A stretch of DNA of 64,000 nucleotides from the sequence record NC_070957.1. One strand, written 5' to 3'. This document shows positions 2,198 through 12,153 of the stretch, one piece after another. Within the stretch, counting starts at the first letter, position 1; each line of letters opens with the position of its first letter. Under the pieces are notes generated by a model. It saw only the letters and a program-made list of their open reading frames with translations. It ran no database searches and was not told the origin of the DNA. Position numbers and translations under genes: made by a program.

Positions 2198-3940
2198 TTA
2201 TGCCGCTTCTTTCTGTTTCTGCTCTTCAATGAATGGCATTACTCGGCTTGCATAGAAGTCATTTGCTTCAACCAAACTAGGCATGCCGAAGATTGTTGTG
2301 CACAGGGTGTTCGCATTAGCTATCGGACTACTGGCATAGTTAACACCGAGTCGTCTGTAATCCAAGCGATCAAGACCTTGTACTTCGCAAACCTCCAGCT
2401 TAGTGGTCTTGTTAGACACGTTAAGCGCAACGGTAACGTGAGGGTACGCACCAGTTACGTCAATGTCGTCCGTGGAACCACGCCCCATTGATTTCCAGTC
2501 CTGGAGACCGGTATACAACGCTCTGCCATTGGCTTCGTTGAGTTCAGCATGAAGCAACGCAATCCAGTCACGAAGATCTGGCTTAAGTTCTTTGAACGGA
2601 TCCTCTTTACGACGACCAACAGTTCCCCAAACATAACCATTTTGTTTTGCAATGAATGACAGTTTGTCAGAGATCATTGACGGTTGGGATTGATAGGAAC
2701 GAAGCTCAGAAGAAGTAACCAGAGACGGTAACGACAGTGAGTAATCGTTAGTTGCTCGGTTAAGATCTTCGATAGTCCAGTTATCTCGGATGTTGTACAT
2801 CGCGTACAGATACGGTTCATGTTTGAGCATCCATTTGTGCCACTCAGCAGAACCAGCCTGGAGATGTGAACCTTTCTCCGTATACAACTTACCTTCGATG
2901 CCTTCTGATTCAGCTGTGAACTGAAGACTGTACGATTCACGTTTACCACCAGGGGCGCGTTTAATAGCATAGAACGACATGCCATCGAACCACTGCCACT
3001 TAGCGGGTGCTTGAACCACAGGGAATTTCTCGTGGTTATCCAACGGTGACTTAGAACCATCTACCTTCGTCTTAAACTGCCGACCAGGATAATAAAGATA
3101 ATCTTGGTAAGCACGTGGACAATCAGGGTCAGAGTAAGTCATCGCCAGGTCGTAACCTTCATTCAACAAAGCTTCCTGGTTCGCTTCCATATCAAAGTTA
3201 GCGTTCCATGAAACAATGAAGTCAGGTCCTACCTTGTGCCACCACTGAATGTTGTTGTAAACAATCACCCCAGGACGATCGGCCAACTCATAAACGATTT
3301 CAACGTTATGTTTGTCGATATACTCTTGGAGATATTGCTTCTCGTACAACTTCAAATTCTTCATGATGGTTTCGTCATCATGACCGTGGAATATCTCACG
3401 GAGACCACACCAGTAAACCTTATTCTTGATGGTGGTAGATGCCATGTTGATTGGACCGGTACTGCCGTCATCCAGAATGAAGGTCTCCACGTCATACGCG
3501 GCTACTGAGTACGCTTCTTGCGGTTGGTGATCTGGGTACTTATCGAAGAACTTCTGCTTGAAGATAACCGGAACAGTTTCCTGACATCCAAATACGAATG
3601 GGTTATTCTTCAACATGGTGATGTCAGCTTTACGGTCAGGACGACCATGCAACACCTTACTAATGTTGACATGAAGTCGTGCTGCGTTAGAACTGAACTT
3701 GTCACACTTCTTGATTTCGATGTAGTCTCGGTTATCCTTGAAGGTCCGATATTTGGGTTTCACCACATAGAAATCAGTTTTGTAATCTTCCAAGAAGACG
3801 AGACGATCTGTACGCCCACCCTCTTCGTCGATCTCAGTAATCTTGGCTGTCAGAAGGTCATGGTCCGGGTCATTCTTGTGATAGCTCAAATACGCGTGTT
3901 TGCAAACACGAGCAATTACTTTTGGTTTCGTGGTTAGCAT
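2198..3940 (-). CDS. Split family-B DNA polymerase, 3'-5' exonuclease + motif A subunit (phiKZ gp082-like), 580 aa
   Basis: ExoI AAYDVETF, ExoII SWNANFD, ExoIII YNIRD, PolB motif A DIDVTGAYP; no DTD motif C seen. Confidence 0.85.
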   Translation of the reverse strand: MLTTKPKVIARVCKHAYLSYHKNDPDHDLLTAKITEIDEEGGRTDRLVFLEDYKTDFYVVKPKYRTFKDNRDYIEIKKCDKFSSNAARLHVNISKVLHGRPDRKADITMLKNNPFVFGCQETVPVIFKQKFFDKYPDHQPQEAYSVAAYDVETFILDDGSTGPINMASTTIKNKVYWCGLREIFHGHDDETIMKNLKLYEKQYLQEYIDKHNVEIVYELADRPGVIVYNNIQWWHKVGPDFIVSWNANFDMEANQEALLNEGYDLAMTYSDPDCPRAYQDYLYYPGRQFKTKVDGSKSPLDNHEKFPVVQAPAKWQWFDGMSFYAIKRAPGGKRESYSLQFTAESEGIEGKLYTEKGSHLQAGSAEWHKWMLKHEPYLYAMYNIRDNWTIEDLNRATNDYSLSLPSLVTSSELRSYQSQPSMISDKLSFIAKQNGYVWGTVGRRKEDPFKELKPDLRDWIALLHAELNEANGRALYTGLQDWKSMGRGSTDDIDVTGAYPHVTVALNVSNKTTKLEVCEVQGLDRLDYRRLGVNYASSPIANANTLCTTIFGMPSLVEANDFYASRVMPFIEEQKQKEAA

Positions 3941-3977
3941 TGTTACACTCTCTACTTAATCTAATTATAAGACCTCG

Positions 3978-3986
3978 AATGTTATG
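3978..3986 (+). promoter_or_regulatory. Candidate late promoter AATGTTATG
   Basis: TATG-containing motif recurring at 18213 and 29509, each before structural genes; phiKZ late promoters have TATG at the start site. Confidence 0.45.
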
Positions 3987-4056
3987 ACGTCTTAAGAAAT
4001 GGGGTTCGCTAAACTATAGCTTCCTCACTGTTTATTTACTCCGGAGCAAAACAGTT

Positions 4057-5412
4057 ATGATTGGTATTGACTTCATCAGACCCCGGGCCGATTTCGGACC
4101 CATGGGGTTTAGTGGTTTGGAATTTTTGGACAAACAAACTGACACAGTATTTCGTCAGCTTGTTACCATGTTCCAGACCATGATCAAACAAGATCAGCAC
4201 GGTCAAAACGTCCTGGATTGGGACAACGCTGACCGCCAGGAAATCAGTGATTATCTTCTCGACGCAACCGGGATGAAGATCATTATGATGGATGGCACCA
4301 ACACCGTTGGTAACGCCGCTATCGAAGCAGGGTACTTCTCCCCCAACAACCTGATCAACAGCACCGAGGTTGACAAGTGGTTGGATGTGAAACACACCAA
4401 CGTTGCACAGGCACTCCGTACACTCAAGGTTGACGTGATGTCCGGTTGGATCGATACTTCTACTGGTAAGGTCGGTGGTGACCTCAGTAAGATCGAATTC
4501 AAACTCTACATCCAGTCCTACCTGGACATGTTCCTCGTTCAAAAGCGTTTCGCTAAATGGGGTGCTAACTTCCCCGAGCTGTTGGCTTCCATTGTTCTTC
4601 ATGAAATGGGTCACGCTTGGACAGCGATGGTTTACGCATTCCAAACCTGTTTCGACTCTTTGTTCCCGATTGCTGCGGTTCGACTGGCGATGAACGCCAA
4701 GGGTGAACGCGAGAAAGCAACGATCATCAAAGAAGCAAAGGCAGCCCTGGAGATCCCTGAGAACCTCACGGACAAAGATCTCGAAGTAATGGCCGATCCC
4801 GAAGGTCTGACACTCTACTTCAAGAAAGCCATCGAAACCCGCAACCTCCGTCGTACACTGTCTCTGGGTGTCAGTGCTCGTAACGCTGAAAGCTTCGCTG
4901 ACATTTACGCTGTTCGGATGGGTGCCAGTAAAGAACTGGTGATCGCACTCGCTTCTCTTCCAAACGCCGTCCCGATGTGGGTCCCGACTTGGTTCATGGT
5001 GGCTGCCGTGCTTGGTTCCATGGTGGGTTCTCCTTTCATTGTCGGTTACGCCGGCACCATGGCTGTGTTGATGACTCTGGTCTCCCTGGCGGAATCTCTT
5101 CGCCCTGGCGATACTTACGACACTCCGTATCGTCGTATAAAGGCAATCCTTCGTGAGATGGTTGCTGAATTCCAGAATTCCAAGCACCTCTCCAACAATG
5201 ACAAACGTCGTCTGTTGAATCAGTGCAAAGACATGGCCAAACTGATCGAAGATCAGAAACCCATGCTGGAAGGTACTGCCGTTCAACGCATGGTAGGTTG
5301 GATCTTCTCTGGTTCTGACTTCAAGGCTCAGGACTTCGAACACTACACCCACGAAATCATGTCCCACAATCTCAGTCTCTACGAAGACTTCTTCAAATCC
5401 GATAAGGAGTAA
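4057..5412 (+). CDS. Zincin (M48-like) metallopeptidase-like protein with hydrophobic hairpin, probable virion protein, 451 aa
   Basis: HEMGH (4600-4614), downstream AESFADIYA, ~40-aa hydrophobic segment; first gene of the structural operon. Confidence 0.7.
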   Translation: MIGIDFIRPRADFGPMGFSGLEFLDKQTDTVFRQLVTMFQTMIKQDQHGQNVLDWDNADRQEISDYLLDATGMKIIMMDGTNTVGNAAIEAGYFSPNNLINSTEVDKWLDVKHTNVAQALRTLKVDVMSGWIDTSTGKVGGDLSKIEFKLYIQSYLDMFLVQKRFAKWGANFPELLASIVLHEMGHAWTAMVYAFQTCFDSLFPIAAVRLAMNAKGEREKATIIKEAKAALEIPENLTDKDLEVMADPEGLTLYFKKAIETRNLRRTLSLGVSARNAESFADIYAVRMGASKELVIALASLPNAVPMWVPTWFMVAAVLGSMVGSPFIVGYAGTMAVLMTLVSLAESLRPGDTYDTPYRRIKAILREMVAEFQNSKHLSNNDKRRLLNQCKDMAKLIEDQKPMLEGTAVQRMVGWIFSGSDFKAQDFEHYTHEIMSHNLSLYEDFFKSDKE

Positions 5413-5414
5413 CT

Positions 5415-5864
5415 ATGTCTCATCTCGCTCACCTGGTCGAAGTACAACAAGACCTGATCGCCAAAGGCGTTACATCCCCCAAGGTTCACATGGACGTGGG
5501 TCGTGGTGCCTATGTGCGTGCCCTGGCCGTGTTCCAACAGCGTCGCCGTCTTCCCGAAAAGGATCTCGGTCATTTCAATGACATGATCCTGGGTTACTGG
5601 AACGAAACCTCCCCCATCCAGGGTAACCTGATCATCGCTGAACTGCGCGCATTCAATGCCGCACTCCGTAACCAACTGGAATCACTGGGTGGTCTGGACC
5701 AAGTTTGTGTCGAATTCGTACGACCCGCTGACCTGGACGCATCCATTCAAGTTTCCAGCCTGAATGGTTTCAAAGCCATGGTTGAGTCCTTGGTATCCGA
5801 TACCGAGAAGAAACTCAAGGAATGGTTGGAGTGTGATTACTTCAGTGTTAACGAGGCGGTATAA
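5415..5864 (+). CDS. Hypothetical protein, probable virion component, 149 aa
   Basis: ORF track, SD AAGGAG, tight operon packing. Confidence 0.65.
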   Translation: MSHLAHLVEVQQDLIAKGVTSPKVHMDVGRGAYVRALAVFQQRRRLPEKDLGHFNDMILGYWNETSPIQGNLIIAELRAFNAALRNQLESLGGLDQVCVEFVRPADLDASIQVSSLNGFKAMVESLVSDTEKKLKEWLECDYFSVNEAV

Positions 5865-5866
5865 CT

Positions 5867-7414
5867 ATGGAAGTTACTGGCACTGAAGAAAAGAAGCTGG
5901 GTAGTGTTATCCAGCTTTCCCCGCACGGTCAATCCGAGAATGTTCGGATGATCTCTCAACCCGAAGATGGTGAACCACTGGTCTCTTTGGACGATATGTA
6001 CGAAGTGACTGGCCAAGAAGCTATCACCAAACTGGTTCGTAGCTGCAACGAGTACTTCAAGAAAGGTCGTCTTGCCAAAGAGTCGATGACCTGTCTCAAC
6101 CTGGTTGGTGCTGAAAGCTTTGTTCCGATGTACGACAAGTACAACGCCCGTCTGGGTGGTGAAAGCTTCGTCAAAGGTCTGAAAGACGGTTTCGTGGCTG
6201 TCATCAAGGCGATCATCAAGTGGATCAAAGCACTGACAGCCTGGATCATCAATGGTGTTAAAACTCTGTTGGGGTTCAACAAAACCGAACATGAGTGCGC
6301 CATCGCTTCCGAGAACGCTGACAGTATCACCAAGAACGTTTCGGCACTCCTCGGTTCTGTATTCGAAACCGGTAAGGATGAATACACTGCTTGGGTGAAT
6401 GACACTGCAATGGTGGAAGGCATTCCCAATAACCTGGGTAACCGGAACACTGTGAAGGTGATTCACGCTAAGACTCTTAGCGCTGAGGAATCTCTCGCCA
6501 AGATGGTGGCGAATACAGAAGTCATCAACCAAGTGGACAAGCTGATCGCTGATTCCCGAGCTCGTGAACAGAAGGCTGCTTCTGATTACAAAGTTGCTAT
6601 CGCAAGACTTCGTCGTAAGGCGAAAGAAGAGAAAGTAACTGAATCAGATGTTGCTGAGTTCGTTGAAGAACTCGAACGGATCGTATTCCAGGACATCAAG
6701 TTCCGTGAACTGGCCAAGACCTCCAAAGACCTGATTTCGTCTCTGTTCGATATCGAGATTAAGGACCTGGGTTACGACGCCAACTTCAAGGAATTGAAAG
6801 AGCTCACTCGGAACCAGATCATCACCACACAGGTGAAGACATTCGATCGCCAGGAAGCTGTTTTCGCCAAAGCACTAGCTGGTATTAAGAAACGCACTGC
6901 TGACGCATCCACTCGTTTCCTCGATACCAAAGCAATGACTGCGTTCAGTGAAATCGCCGACGAAGATGACGCTATCTTCATTCGTGGTGTTTCCGAGATC
7001 ACTGGTAACGGCATCATGGGTGACTTCGCGACCTTCAAGACACGTCAGCGTGGTTATCTGGAGCTGATCGAAACAGTTACTCGTGTTCTGGCATCCACCA
7101 AAGCCACCATGAACAGCATGGTCGATTACAACTCTCGTTTGAAGGCGATCACCGCCGCTTACGTTGTTCGTGATCTGGAAGCCATTGCCGATTACAACAA
7201 GAAGATCAGTAAAGAGAATGCCGACATTCTGACTCAGGGTGGTGGTTCTCTCTTCTTCGATATGGATGACACTTCCGTACTGAAGTCGTACTATCCTGGT
7301 CTCCATGTAACTGACGATCTGGTACTCGCCATCCGCAACGCACGGGAACTCCCCAAGGTGAAAGGTGCTATCAACAACCTGCTGGGTTCTCTCGGTGTTG
7401 GTATGAGGGTTTAA
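5867..7414 (+). CDS. Head/ejection protein with propeptide, 515 aa
   Basis: TGQEAI, VGAESF and LGGESF sites then an amphipathic helix; helical body; position among phiKZ/SPN3US-type head genes. Confidence 0.7.
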   Translation: MEVTGTEEKKLGSVIQLSPHGQSENVRMISQPEDGEPLVSLDDMYEVTGQEAITKLVRSCNEYFKKGRLAKESMTCLNLVGAESFVPMYDKYNARLGGESFVKGLKDGFVAVIKAIIKWIKALTAWIINGVKTLLGFNKTEHECAIASENADSITKNVSALLGSVFETGKDEYTAWVNDTAMVEGIPNNLGNRNTVKVIHAKTLSAEESLAKMVANTEVINQVDKLIADSRAREQKAASDYKVAIARLRRKAKEEKVTESDVAEFVEELERIVFQDIKFRELAKTSKDLISSLFDIEIKDLGYDANFKELKELTRNQIITTQVKTFDRQEAVFAKALAGIKKRTADASTRFLDTKAMTAFSEIADEDDAIFIRGVSEITGNGIMGDFATFKTRQRGYLELIETVTRVLASTKATMNSMVDYNSRLKAITAAYVVRDLEAIADYNKKISKENADILTQGGGSLFFDMDDTSVLKSYYPGLHVTDDLVLAIRNARELPKVKGAINNLLGSLGVGMRV

Positions 7415-7415
7415 C

Positions 7416-8096
7416 ATGGTTATCAAAGAAGAAATCCGCAAAACAGCGGAAGAGATCATTGCTGGTCAGCAACAACTGAACCGGTACAATGAGTACTACG
7501 AAACGTTCCTCTCAGAGGCGCGGTGTAAGAAGGGGATCATGGATTTCCTTAGCACCCTCTTCGACAAAGAAACTACTGACGAATTCGTTCAGTATCCCTA
7601 TGGTCGAGCCAGAGAAGAAATGGTTCTCAAACTCACCACTGGTAAGTCGGCAGCTAACTCTATGCTCTGTCGTCGACTGATCATGGACGTGGGTGTGGAA
7701 TCCAGAGGTTTCCAAGCTTTGGAAGAAGCACGCAAGACACTTCTCAATCAAGTAGCCGATTATATCGTGCAGACCTTTGAGAAGCTGAACAAGTCAGAAC
7801 TGACGGATGTGCATGAGCGCCATGTGTATTTGCGCCGTGCAATCGCTAAGCTGGTTCGGTTGTTCTACACCGCTCCCCTGGCAGCTATCACCATGGACCA
7901 ATGGTCCGAGGTTGAACCTTCCGAACACACCAAGTATCTCACTACCACTATCGAGGAAATGGTTGATCGGATTCGACCGACTCGTACTGATGGCTGGTGT
8001 TCTGTTTGGTTCGCTGAAAATGGTTTGGATAACACGAACGTTATTCGTTCCATTATCAGTTATCTGGACTATCTGGATACATTCGACCAGTATTAA
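7416..8096 (+). CDS. Hypothetical protein, 226 aa
   Basis: ORF track; starts 2 nt after the previous stop; followed by terminator. Confidence 0.65.
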   Translation: MVIKEEIRKTAEEIIAGQQQLNRYNEYYETFLSEARCKKGIMDFLSTLFDKETTDEFVQYPYGRAREEMVLKLTTGKSAANSMLCRRLIMDVGVESRGFQALEEARKTLLNQVADYIVQTFEKLNKSELTDVHERHVYLRRAIAKLVRLFYTAPLAAITMDQWSEVEPSEHTKYLTTTIEEMVDRIRPTRTDGWCSVWFAENGLDNTNVIRSIISYLDYLDTFDQY

Positions 8097-8148: not shown

Positions 8149-11067
8149 TTATGATCTTGGCATGTGGCGCTTGAACATTATCTCGATGGACTCTTTGATT
8201 GTCAGGAGTTGGTCAGAGGTCTGATCCAGTTCCTTACGTACAGAGAAACCATTCGTGTCATCGATGTTGGTGATAACGTCAACCGGTTCGTTACCGGCAG
8301 TTGCGATTATCTTAACGTCGAGCACGTCACTGGATTTAAGGACACGAGTGAGCTCAGAAACACTGAAGGTCTTGCTACGAAGGTGTTCGTTGGTTACCTG
8401 GTGAGTGTTCTTAATCAAACTGTTCTTCAGGTCATTGTCAGCCATACCCTCGTCATTGAGGTAGTAAGTGACAGTAAACCCGATGTCGGTACGAATGGTT
8501 TTCTCGATACCCTCGTTGAGGATAACCTGAGTAAAGCCCATCGTGGACCGAGGTTTAAACAGTATCGTGGTTTCATCCAGTGTGGACTTGTTCAGATCAG
8601 TCAACCAGTCGTTAACTTCGTTAGCGAAGAAGTCTTCTACCAACCCGACGTAAGTGGCGTCGTACTCATCCTGACTGAGCAGGTAGTTGAAGTCAAACCC
8701 GATGAAGTCCCAATGGTACTTCAGGAGTCTCGGATGGAGAAGTACTGGTTTATCATCCTGATCGTAAACAGTAGTGCCTTTCTCATGTTCCCAAACCGGA
8801 GAACCATCGGCGTTATACCGAGTTTCACCAGCCTTGTGTTCAAGGACTGCTTTCCCGTCTACAATGACCAGTTTCCCGTTTTCGTACTTGTACACATCTT
8901 CCTTGTAAACAGCAGGAACGTTGTCAGTGTACTTCGCGTACTGAGCTGGTCCGATAATCGGTCTGATCCGTGCATAAAGCGAACTGAGTCGTTTACCAAA
9001 TTGAACACGGTATTCCGTTTCAATAATGGCTACACTCAACTGCTCGAACAGAGACTGATCGATTTTACCGTCAGAGGGAGAACGGAGAACTTGTCCATCA
9101 CCAGCATAGGTAAAGATAAACGTGGCGATCTCTTCCAGTTTGACACGGACTTCATCTTGAGGACGTCCAAACTGTTGGAAACCACGAAGGTCTATCTCGT
9201 CACGATCTGTGATGTCGAAACGACTAGGGATCTTGAATTCCCATACACGTTCCTTATCCTTGTTCAGACCTTTCAATTTACCACGGATAGAAGCCAGTGC
9301 GTTGGAACCTTCAGTGTTCAAAGACATCTGAATTCCAACAGATGTGTCGGCGAGCTTCTTATATGCTTCAGAGGACTTGGTGACTATACCAATCGTGTAA
9401 CCTTCCTCATCCACAGTGATGTTGATCTGACCGATCCCGGCCTGGATACCCAGAGATGCGTTTTCATACCGGAAGGTCTGGTAACGAATCTGAGGGCGAT
9501 CGGTTCTGTACGTTCTGATGGACGCACGGTTGTCAGATGTATCGATCACATACATGAACGGAGTGTAGACCAATGAACGCTCACCAGACACATCAATCTT
9601 GGTTTGGTTCCCAGCCCGCTTCAACTGCTCGATTTCATACTTGGGGACGAACCGAGCCGTTTGTTCAGTAATGTCGAATACAGCACCACGAGGTATAGTG
9701 ATGCGGCGTCCATTGTCGATAGCATTAGCCGTGCTGATCAGTTCTTCCAACGATGCCAGATGGGTACCAGTGTAGGTGCCAATAGAGCTGTTGAAACGAG
9801 CCAGAGATTCATCTTCGAACAACTTGGTTTCCTGGATAGGAAGGTCCTTAGTGGTTCGGTAAAGACGGTTAGTTACAAAGTCAATGGACTTAACCGAGTC
9901 GTAACCATTCCGCAACAGGGTTTGGGTGAGGTCGCTGTTACTAACTGGTACCTGGCGTCGACGATGGCGATAGACGACCATATTCTTGAGCTCTTGGAAA
10001 CTAGCGCTATCCAGACCACCCACCACAGGTTCGATTGTGTCCAGTGTCACTGTACTCGCGGAACGAAGCGGGACGCTATAACCAGACAACTTACCTTGGG
10101 GGTTGCTGTAGTCATAGTAAGCGTACGTGTGCTCCTTCGTCCTCAGCGTCGAGAGATCCTGATTCATTTTACCACGAGTGGTGTAGGTGAGAATCGTGAT
10201 GCGACCGAGTGCCATTCCGTTCTGAAGATAAACAGAAGGAATAGACGCCTCATAGACACCATCCCGGATCATATCGATAGTCAGGGTCGGCATTGCCGGA
10301 TCGAAGACGTCATTGTTGAACACAACAGCCATCTCGCTACGACGGGTACTCCCATCAGGAGTGATGAACGCCCTAACGGCATAAAGCTTGTCGTTGTAAT
10401 CGATCCGATCCCGGAAACCCACCGCCATGTTAACAGCCGTAGCCGGTTTCTCTTTCACCTCCAATTGACGTACAGGAAGATGAATAGAGAGATAACGCTG
10501 ATCATCGATGTTCAGCTCTTCGTAACGAGGTGAGTTGGAGGAGAGAGGATACAGCGGGGACTGTTTTTCAGAGTTGTAAACAATCTGAAGTCCACCGTGT
10601 TCCATCAACCGGATCTCGACCGGATTTTCCAGCAGGAAGGGAATACCCGCGACCGTGAAGATGGTGTCGGACGGGAGTTCCAGCTTACGGTAGTTGTTAA
10701 CAGCAGTCCCGACTACCTCAGTGAAGGGGAGAGCACGCTTCTCCAATTCATCCATGGCGATCATCCAACGGAACGTAGTGCCGCTGGGTTCGGCAAATAC
10801 ACCGTACCAATCTTCGTCACTCATGTTAGCAGCCAGATCGGCAATAGTTCTTGCATGAGTGGGGAAACGCTTGGCAATGCCGTCACCATTGCGCACTGCA
10901 AAGTTGTACTGGGTTGCCACGATCATATCGAGAGCATAGGAGAACGGATGCCCGGCTGCGTTAATCGAACCAGGTCCTGTTCCCAAGGCATCTTCGATTT
11001 CTTGGAAGCAGCGGTTGATAGCACGTGCCGGGTTATTCCGATATCGCTCTAAATCATCATAAGTCAT
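8149..11067 (-). CDS. Virion structural protein, probable baseplate wedge (phiKZ gp087-like), 972 aa
   Basis: Size, strand, beta-rich composition and remembered synteny; T4 gp6-like role is inference. Confidence 0.6.
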   Translation of the reverse strand: MTYDDLERYRNNPARAINRCFQEIEDALGTGPGSINAAGHPFSYALDMIVATQYNFAVRNGDGIAKRFPTHARTIADLAANMSDEDWYGVFAEPSGTTFRWMIAMDELEKRALPFTEVVGTAVNNYRKLELPSDTIFTVAGIPFLLENPVEIRLMEHGGLQIVYNSEKQSPLYPLSSNSPRYEELNIDDQRYLSIHLPVRQLEVKEKPATAVNMAVGFRDRIDYNDKLYAVRAFITPDGSTRRSEMAVVFNNDVFDPAMPTLTIDMIRDGVYEASIPSVYLQNGMALGRITILTYTTRGKMNQDLSTLRTKEHTYAYYDYSNPQGKLSGYSVPLRSASTVTLDTIEPVVGGLDSASFQELKNMVVYRHRRRQVPVSNSDLTQTLLRNGYDSVKSIDFVTNRLYRTTKDLPIQETKLFEDESLARFNSSIGTYTGTHLASLEELISTANAIDNGRRITIPRGAVFDITEQTARFVPKYEIEQLKRAGNQTKIDVSGERSLVYTPFMYVIDTSDNRASIRTYRTDRPQIRYQTFRYENASLGIQAGIGQINITVDEEGYTIGIVTKSSEAYKKLADTSVGIQMSLNTEGSNALASIRGKLKGLNKDKERVWEFKIPSRFDITDRDEIDLRGFQQFGRPQDEVRVKLEEIATFIFTYAGDGQVLRSPSDGKIDQSLFEQLSVAIIETEYRVQFGKRLSSLYARIRPIIGPAQYAKYTDNVPAVYKEDVYKYENGKLVIVDGKAVLEHKAGETRYNADGSPVWEHEKGTTVYDQDDKPVLLHPRLLKYHWDFIGFDFNYLLSQDEYDATYVGLVEDFFANEVNDWLTDLNKSTLDETTILFKPRSTMGFTQVILNEGIEKTIRTDIGFTVTYYLNDEGMADNDLKNSLIKNTHQVTNEHLRSKTFSVSELTRVLKSSDVLDVKIIATAGNEPVDVITNIDDTNGFSVRKELDQTSDQLLTIKESIEIMFKRHMPRS

Positions 11068-11076
11068 TTCTTTTCC

Positions 11077-12153
11077 TTATTTACGCACCCACCAGGTGAG
11101 TTTGATACCATCACGCCCCACAGCACCATCTTGCCTACGGTCATTACGAACCGGCAGCAAAAGAGGATACGCACCAGAGTAACCGTATTCAAGATACTCA
11201 TCAGCAGAGAGTCTCCTGAAATACTGATCACGGGTCTTTGGTCGGATGTTGGGGTTGTACATGTAACTGTGTTCGTTAAAGGCTTGGATCAATCCAGGTT
11301 CGTTGAACCGCATCGCTGTGGAACTGAACTGAACCGAGAAGTCATCCTGCCCTTCCCCACGCAGTGAGTTTTGGGTGTTATCGATATTAGCCTGGGACCC
11401 TGATGGGAACGTCACAGGTATAGATTGAACTGTGGCGAATATTTGTTCCAGGAATTCACCGTCCTTATTCATGATAAGGTGGTAAATGCGTGTATCGTAA
11501 TCGATACGGTTCCCAAACAAATATTTAGCCCTTGGATAACAGCCCCGGTCACCACTTGTTACTTCAGAAATATAGGTCATCCAGTATTGGAACAGAGCCG
11601 GAATAACACTGGGTTTAGGGTTGAAGTAAGTCTGGTTCATAGAGTAAAGACCGTTCTCTTCCAGCTTACTCGCAACTCGTTGATAAACCTGTTCCCGCAT
11701 ACCAGGATCAGTGGTCTGGATTTGCATACTCAAATCACCGAAACCATTACTGGTTTTGAGGTAAGTTGTTAATGCAACGATGAATGGATTGGCATTATCA
11801 AGAGCCGGACACGGATTGGCGGCAGCCCACCGTTCATCCAGAGTCCCTCTTATATATGCACCGATAGAGTTACCAGATACGTCCTTCAAAACTTTCAAAC
11901 GCTCTGAACGTGCAATGACATCATCGATCAGATTCAGCTGGGGTCTGGTCACGAAGCTTAATCCTATGGTGTCATCAGCCAGCGGCATCATGGCCGGGCC
12001 TTTACCAAAGATCCTGAATGACCTTAAACTGTTCATCAACGGGGCATTTGTCCCCGGAGTTCCAGAGTCCAGTAAAGCTGCGTTGAATATGTCTTTGCTG
12101 TGTTCCAGGGTTTCCCCTGAATAGTTTGTAAAATCTTCCTTATTATCTTCCAT
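11077..12153 (-). CDS. Virion structural protein, possible tail-tube/baseplate junction protein (phiKZ gp088-like), 358 aa
   Basis: ORF track and synteny with the 972-aa gene; role is inference. Confidence 0.55.
   Translation of the reverse strand: MEDNKEDFTNYSGETLEHSKDIFNAALLDSGTPGTNAPLMNSLRSFRIFGKGPAMMPLADDTIGLSFVTRPQLNLIDDVIARSERLKVLKDVSGNSIGAYIRGTLDERWAAANPCPALDNANPFIVALTTYLKTSNGFGDLSMQIQTTDPGMREQVYQRVASKLEENGLYSMNQTYFNPKPSVIPALFQYWMTYISEVTSGDRGCYPRAKYLFGNRIDYDTRIYHLIMNKDGEFLEQIFATVQSIPVTFPSGSQANIDNTQNSLRGEGQDDFSVQFSSTAMRFNEPGLIQAFNEHSYMYNPNIRPKTRDQYFRRLSADEYLEYGYSGAYPLLLPVRNDRRQDGAVGRDGIKLTWWVRK

Follow-up and report, generated by a model that had tools for sequence, protein, structure and literature searches.

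D3_0079 of Aeromonas phage D3: a predicted M48-like zinc peptidase with a hydrophobic hairpin in a conserved family of jumbo phage head proteins

Among the M48 peptidases, Ste24 has seven transmembrane helices that form a chamber, and its HExxH motif and the zinc-site Glu are placed on transmembrane helices VI and VII. HtpX (M48B) spans the membrane four times, and a hairpin separates its HExxH from the Glu. It is a cellular quality-control enzyme and not a virion component. The internal proteins (IPs) and Alt of phage T4 carry an N-terminal capsid-targeting propeptide which is cut by the prohead protease. In the Chimalliviridae, the core gene cg22 (Goslar gp067, phiKZ gp084, RAY gp286) has been listed as a “putative virion structural protein” (Prichard et al. 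2023, supplement). Here, we describe D3_0079, a gene of Aeromonas phage D3 located in a 64,000-nucleotide stretch of sequence record NC_070957.1 (hereafter the window, meaning all of the DNA analysed), which by sequence comparison is an orthologue of cg22 and whose product is predicted to work like an M48-type gluzincin.

D3_0079 falls into phrog_2767 (function unknown) with an E-value of 3e-74, and phiKZ gp84 and SPN3US gp45 are in the same PHROG. Alignment by hhalign covered the full length of SPN3US gp45 at 100% probability (E 1e-42) and gave 99.8% probability for phiKZ gp84, while a family profile searched against phiKZ returned a single match, PHIKZ084 (gp84). On these homologies D3_0079 is the cg22 orthologue of phage D3, corresponding to phiKZ gp84, SPN3US gp45, Goslar gp67, RAY gp286, and OBP gp100, and cg22 is present as a single copy in D3, SPN3US, and OBP. 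The members of cg22/phrog_2767 resemble D3_0079 in full-length homology, gene order, and N-terminal cleavage motif, and no difference of substance was seen. The D3_0079 sequence is 100% identical to the Aeromonas phage D3 record MN102098.2 (262 kb, genus Ludhianavirus), in which position 4057 of the window corresponds to position 66057. LAh10, a sister phage of D3 with 97.9% identity over D3_0079, is on the published list of chimallin-encoding (nucleus-forming) phages, and D3 is therefore treated as a chimallivirus here. The phiKZ chimallin gave no match in the D3 genome, which is uninformative at such divergence.

An exhaustive profile search (E<=1e-3) recovered 1861 cluster representatives of the family, nearly all of which are 415-480 amino acids (aa) long. 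Conservation was counted in an alignment of 40 of these representatives with 17-48% identity to D3_0079. Twelve positions are invariant in this alignment (M1, E22, G141, H182, E183, G185, H186, E278, A281, D282, G289, and R360), and G324 and Y354 are nearly so. E183 is kept in all 40 sequences although it is not a metal ligand. An HExxH motif appears by chance in 0.5% of shuffles of the D3_0079 protein, and conservation across the 40 homologues is stronger evidence against chance than this rate.

A sequence-only reading of the window had proposed that D3_0079 encodes an M48-like membrane metallopeptidase, and the motifs that it named are all where it placed them, with HEMGH at residues 182-186, AESFADIYA containing E278, and DTYDTPYRRI at residues 352-361. 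It had made its case depend on conservation of the catalytic residues in homologues, and HExxH, ExxAD, and R360 are conserved in 40 of 40. H182 and H186 of HExxH together with E278 of ExxAD are the predicted zinc ligands, E183 is the predicted general base, and Y354 and R360 would be the counterparts of the M48 “HP....R” motif. The spacing of this third motif is equal in HtpX (H276...R282-I283) and D3_0079 (Y354...R360-I361). It had also been observed that the HP position is not conserved, which holds across the family, where Tyr is usual, His is found in 3 of the 40 members, and the Pro is not kept. In other gluzincins a Tyr serves the equivalent transition-state role. The His-bearing sequences are distant members (L012:7976-9286 and its homologues P0083, P0097, and P0119) in which the canonical M48 “H...R” pattern is restored, and His at this position could mark the ancestral state. 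An alignment of the four Escherichia coli M48 paralogues HtpX, BepA, YcaL, and LoiP with three HtpX orthologues has HExxH, ExxAD, and H-P...R as its invariant set, which matches the invariant set of the phage family.

Structure prediction points in the same direction. The full-length AlphaFold2 (AF2) model of D3_0079 reached a predicted local distance difference test (pLDDT) score of 77.9 and a predicted template modelling (pTM) score of 0.78. VIA-align searches with this model were dominated by the helical hairpin described below (ZMPSTE24 at rank 45), and the catalytic domain was therefore refolded alone, which gave a pLDDT of 90. Against 48,161 solved chains, the two best VIA-align matches of the domain model were ZMPSTE24 and Ste24p, the M48A CAAX prenyl proteases (PDB 4il3, 6bh8), and the other structural matches spanning the whole domain were all zinc metallopeptidases, mostly M48-like gluzincins. 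The predicted fold of the catalytic domain is thus like that of solved M48 structures. A whole-length match was also obtained between the D3_0079 model and an AlphaFold DB cluster representative named “Peptidase M48 domain-containing protein” (E 2e-10, template modelling score 0.57), which is evidently a member of the same family that automatic annotation had already called M48.

Profile searches gave fainter signals, and these too fall nearest to M48. When the domain profile was run against all PDB sequences, six matches had E<10, four of which were Ste24p or ZMPSTE24 at E 0.07-0.09, below significance. Each of these four consisted of two co-linear pieces, one over the HExxH helix and one over the ExxAD helix. 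In a member-by-member scan, Pfam M48 was the sole recurring family (8 of 25 and 10 of 40 members, best E 2e-4). Foldseek comparison of the full-length model with the Swiss-Prot part of AlphaFold DB had HtpX as its weak top matches (E 0.25-3), and the neighbours in the ESM Atlas are clusters of viral proteins, some with PF01435 in 15% of their members.

A hydrophobic stretch of about 40 aa, also remarked on in the sequence-only reading, is real. Residues 294-345 contain no charged residue, Kyte-Doolittle windows of 19 residues reach at least 1.6 over residues 311-345, and the grand average of hydropathy (GRAVY) is 1.44 for residues 304-348. Of 42 family members, 41 have a hydrophobic window in this position, in most of them as the sole hydrophobic region, and the sequence itself is not conserved. 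The region that follows (residues 349-451) is hydrophilic, with a GRAVY of -0.89, and positive residues flank the hairpin C-terminally (R351, R359, R360, K362, and R366). The stretch from HExxH to the Glu is made up of long, soluble, hydrophilic helices (172-212 and 248-268). The membrane topology of M48A or M48B was not found in D3_0079, which has one hydrophobic region only. Where Ste24 has transmembrane helices, D3_0079 has soluble ones, and it differs further from Ste24 in the single hydrophobic hairpin between ExxAD and the third motif and in the Tyr that replaces the His of HP. The four transmembrane segments of HtpX, with the hairpin between HExxH and the Glu, are likewise lacking, and the phage family also differs from HtpX in being a virion component.

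Several observations weigh against placing D3_0079 within M48. The Pfam M48 matches of its relatives are sub-threshold, with a typical score of 17.1 bits versus a cut-off of 20.3, and one match covers HExxH through ExxAD. The D3_0079 protein itself gave no M48 hit in Pfam and nothing in NCBIfam, so that it has no above-threshold score against the HtpX/M48 models, in which it differs from HtpX and from the periplasmic M48 proteases BepA, YcaL, and LoiP of E. coli. In hhalign comparisons with these four paralogues, only the HExxH helix was aligned, at 78% probability, the M48 profile being shallow, and a profile of close homologues found nothing relevant among PDB sequences. The sequence-only reading had suggested Foldseek comparison with M48 and other zincins as a check, and neither the full-length nor the domain model had a Foldseek match in PDB. 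Finally, the hairpin lies C-terminal to ExxAD and not between HExxH and the Glu as in HtpX/Ste24. The M48 assignment consequently stands in part: the zincin site is intact and strongly conserved and the structural, profile, and Pfam signals are nearest to M48, whereas the curated threshold is not reached and the hairpin is placed differently. We conclude from the conserved residues and the modelled fold that D3_0079 works like an M48-type gluzincin, as a predicted activity. It is probably a distant relative of M48, and it is a distinct variant that falls outside M48 as the family is currently defined.

The N-terminus of D3_0079 carries a further feature, a cleavage site that is absent from the earlier reading and new here. 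E22 is invariant in all 40 aligned members, and the residue at position -2 is Gly in 16, Ser in 12, and Ala in 11 of them (39 of 40), which corresponds to (S/A/G)-x-E, the cleavage motif of the prohead protease in phiKZ-like phages. In hhalign, E22 of D3_0079 is placed opposite E20 of SPN3US gp45, for which “Head. Processed at ASE-20” has been mapped by mass spectrometry and whose 20-residue propeptide the authors likened to the capsid-targeting sequence of T4 (PMC5694885). SPN3US gp45 is a confirmed substrate of the prohead protease gp245 (PMC10052503). As the invariant site aligns with the ASE-20 cut, a short propeptide removed by the prohead protease is predicted for D3_0079, similar to that of the T4 IPs and Alt. 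The predicted masses are 50.8 kDa for the precursor and 48.4 kDa for the mature protein, compared with 50.3 and 48.2 kDa for SPN3US gp45, and residues 1-21 are disordered in the model (pLDDT <50). Processing of the N-terminus is strongly supported by motif and orthology.

That the protein is packaged, as had been claimed from the sequence, agrees with the identification of its orthologues as head proteins by mass spectrometry (phiKZ annotation, SPN3US). The record of phiKZ gp84 has the note “structural head protein”, and that of OBP gp100 reads “putative virion structural protein”. SPN3US gp45 has an SC/M of 2.99, versus 8.84 for the 264-copy sheath protein and 22.6 for the 1560-copy capsid protein (PMC5694885), which by rough arithmetic from spectral counts suggests ~90 to 200 copies of gp45 per virion. 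For the orthologues studied as a group, the range would be tens to a few hundred copies. Assignment of D3_0079 as an internal head protein is strongly supported by these orthologues. The prohead protease itself (T4 gp21/phiKZ gp175/SPN3US gp245 type) was considered as an identity for D3_0079 and rejected, as there was no such Pfam or PHROG match and the SPN3US orthologue is a substrate of gp245, which also bears out the earlier statement that the two proteases are distinct. The lead 201phi2-1 “gp146” concerned phiKZ tail protein gp146 and is unrelated. In SPN3US, the second gene downstream of gp45 encodes gp47, a head ejection protein that is essential and for which a transmembrane helix is predicted. 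Unlike the predicted cg22 protein, neither gp47 nor any of the T4 IPs or Alt is a zinc metallopeptidase.

The best overall explanation, which we consider fairly probable, is that D3_0079 is a packaged internal head protein and an M48-like zinc protease that is ejected to the host membrane. It would be made as a 50.8-kDa precursor in a nucleus-forming jumbo phage, and its first ~22 residues probably act as a capsid-targeting propeptide that is cut off by the serine prohead protease, leaving the 48.4-kDa protein inside the capsid. Most likely, the mature protein exits the capsid along with the DNA and further internal proteins and would then be held by its hairpin in the inner membrane of the host or in that of the early phage infection (EPI) vesicle, where it would cut a protein substrate. 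A hairpin of two hydrophobic helices would leave both soluble domains on the membrane face at which it was inserted. As there is no lipid in the capsid and these phages inject many of their internal head proteins, a role of the hairpin after ejection is the most plausible. Action at the host or EPI-vesicle membrane after ejection is on its own a tentative proposal, plausible without being favoured. A more specific version, in which the cg22 protease is ejected with the genome, inserts its hairpin into the EPI-vesicle membrane, and is needed for building or opening the vesicle, for handing the genome over to the chimallin nucleus, or for cutting host inner-membrane proteins such as defence sensors, is speculative and in our view doubtful.

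Some evidence speaks against ejection and membrane action. The first hairpin helix has 16 residues and the second 23, so that the first is short for a full bilayer span, and for this reason the hairpin could be buried or shielded, or only re-entrant. The phiKZ proteins so far reported as injected, in tests of a subset only, do not include gp84, and some internal head proteins stay in the head. In addition, the capsid maps of phiKZ and Goslar showed no gp84. In the phiKZ antisense screen 084 was not among the hits, most structural genes having been omitted from that screen.

A protease acting within the procapsid or capsid would account for several of the same observations. D3_0079 would then be a second, metal-dependent maturation or clearance peptidase working after the serine prohead protease, trimming propeptide fragments or internal proteins, and its hairpin would be buried or bound to the shell, the inner body, or the vertex complex. 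Targeting to the head by a short propeptide, as for the T4 internal proteins, fits this role, as does the need to clear the very long propeptides from the heads of giant phages. The gene is also in close linkage with D3_0080 and D3_0081, which by position correspond to the inner vertex-binding proteins gp85 and gp86, and cg22 is not among the proteins shown to be injected. However, all mapped SPN3US cleavages have been attributed to gp245 (PMC10052503), and a hydrophobic hairpin of 45 residues, kept in 41 of 42 members, would have no clear purpose in a lipid-free compartment. Nor is the protein resolved in icosahedrally ordered capsid maps, and altogether we regard an intracapsid role as unlikely. 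Another alternative is that D3_0079 is a membrane anchor for procapsid assembly. The hairpin of the newly made protein would be inserted into the inner membrane, both domains would face the cytoplasm, and the protein would help to nucleate or tether proheads, which the protease might release. Capsids of these phages have been reported to assemble on the membrane (Prichard et al. 2023), and the positive flank (R351, R359, R360, K362, and R366) fits a topology with both ends cytoplasmic. Yet mature heads contain the orthologue as an internal protein whose propeptide has been processed, and an embedded hairpin would need to be extracted from the bilayer to reach a closed shell. We hold this possibility to be very improbable.

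The least probable of these alternatives, for which we see only a slight chance, is that D3_0079 is a pseudo-protease, i.e., a structural head protein with a zincin-like fold that does not cut and whose metal site serves for stability only. This would explain why the curated M48 thresholds are not reached and why the His of the HP motif is usually Tyr, and it would remove the need for the tight control that an active protease would require when packed among hundreds of other proteins. Against this, the general-base Glu, which is no ligand, is invariant in 40 of 40 members down to 17% identity, as are ExxAD and R360, and the replacement by Tyr is less telling given that Tyr fills an equivalent role in other gluzincins. 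Neighbouring structural genes have moreover diverged beyond detection by BLAST, which D3_0079 has not. We therefore retain the packaged, M48-like zinc protease with a membrane-directed hairpin as the preferred explanation.

The features of D3_0079 and of the genes directly downstream are given in Table 1.

Table 1. Positions in the window of D3_0079, its predicted domains and motifs, and the coupled downstream genes
Feature	Position	Strand	Remarks
GGAG ribosome-binding site	4043..4046	+	10 nt 5' of the D3_0079 ATG; read from the sequence
D3_0079 coding sequence, Aeromonas phage D3	4057..5412	+	451 aa; ATG start; annotated “hypothetical protein”
Predicted propeptide, residues 1-22, ending S-G-L-E	4057..4122	+	(G/S/A)-x-E prohead-protease site; likely capsid-targeting sequence
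Catalytic alpha/beta and helical domain, residues 22-302	4120..4962	+	Predicted gluzincin fold
HEMGH, residues 182-186	4600..4614	+	Invariant 40/40; aligned to HExxH of Ste24p/ZMPSTE24 and HtpX
ESFAD, residues 278-282	4888..4902	+	E278/A281/D282 invariant 40/40; aligned to ExxAD helix of Ste24p and ZMPSTE24
Hydrophobic helical hairpin, residues 304-348	4966..5100	+	Predicted helices 308-323 and 326-348; conserved G324 at the turn
TYDTPYRRI, residues 353-361	5113..5139	+	Counterpart of M48 “HPxxxxR-I/L”, Tyr for His
C-terminal helical region, residues 362-451	5140..5409	+	Secondary structure of the full-length model
D3_0080, D3_0081, and D3_0082	5415..8096	+	Tightly coupled 3' of D3_0079; gaps of 1-2 nt

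D3_0079 is the first gene of a tightly packed block of virion genes on the + strand, in line with the earlier description of it as the head of a virion operon. D3_0080 has 149 aa, the same length as phiKZ gp85, and D3_0080 and D3_0081 are, by position only, the equivalents of phiKZ gp85 and gp86, which form an inner vertex-binding complex (PMC11297242). BLASTP comparisons of D3_0080 and D3_0081 with phiKZ gp85 and gp86 were not significant, and their PHROGs differ. As these neighbours have diverged beyond BLAST detection whereas D3_0079 has not, D3_0079 is, to judge from the sequences, under much stronger constraint than its structural neighbours. Inner-capsid genes of the D3_0080/D3_0081 type evolve far faster than the protease-like D3_0079.

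The gene order is common to D3, OBP, phiKZ, SPN3US, and two distant metagenomic contigs, and comprises a divergent DNA-polymerase-like gene, the D3_0079 orthologue, a gene of ~145-150 aa, a gene of 400-570 aa, and two convergent genes. In phiKZ, it takes the form of the divergent DNA polymerase gene, gp84-85-86, and the convergent pair gp87-88. D3_0078 (2198-3940, - strand, 580 aa) is the divergent gene in D3 and sits at the position of phiKZ gp82/OBP gp99 (DNA polymerase); it had no Pfam match at E<=1e-3. The gap between D3_0078 and D3_0079 measures 116 bp (3941-4056) and must hold the signals for both genes. On the other side, D3_0083 (8149-11067, - strand, 972 aa) keeps its position and size (about 970-1000 aa) in phiKZ (gp87), OBP, SPN3US, and the metagenomic relatives; no Pfam family matches it, and its relatives are annotated only as virion structural protein. 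D3_0084 (11077-12153, - strand), annotated as “hypothetical protein”, matches Pfam PF23971 Phage_TTP_15 (putative phage tail tube protein) with an E-value of 3e-42. By position it corresponds to phiKZ gp88, and the PF23971 family marks the same position in two metagenomic relatives. An open reading frame (ORF) of 443 aa on the opposite strand (4036..5367, - strand), antisense to nearly all of D3_0079, was rejected as a gene and looks like a shadow ORF, because the homologues, the PHROG match, and the annotation are all in the + frame.

Some orthologues in GenBank are labelled “peptidase” (Erwinia phage AH04), “CAAX prenyl protease” (Aeromonas phage AerS_266), or “membrane protein” (Kosakonia phage Kc263), so the idea of a peptidase is not wholly new. 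A literature search on gp84, gp084, PHIKZ084, and M48 in jumbo phages found no study of the function, catalytic motifs, or hairpin of cg22.

D3_0079 documents an M48-like core, as predicted from sequence and model, with soluble helices where Ste24/HtpX have transmembrane ones and with a hairpin at a different place. Nucleus-forming jumbo phages begin infection inside a lipid vesicle, and the formation of this vesicle and the exit of the genome from it were listed as open questions in a 2025 review (PMC12908238). cg22 is a concrete and mutable candidate for these early membrane events, through its active-site Glu and its hairpin, and phiKZ gp84, Goslar gp67, and SPN3US gp45 belong to model phages for which packaging-and-injection assays already exist. 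If it acts only inside the head, cg22 would add a second, metal-dependent protease to the capsid biology of giant phages. If ejection and action at the EPI-vesicle membrane hold true, cg22 would be the first part of the chimallivirus entry machinery that is both enzymatic and membrane-active.

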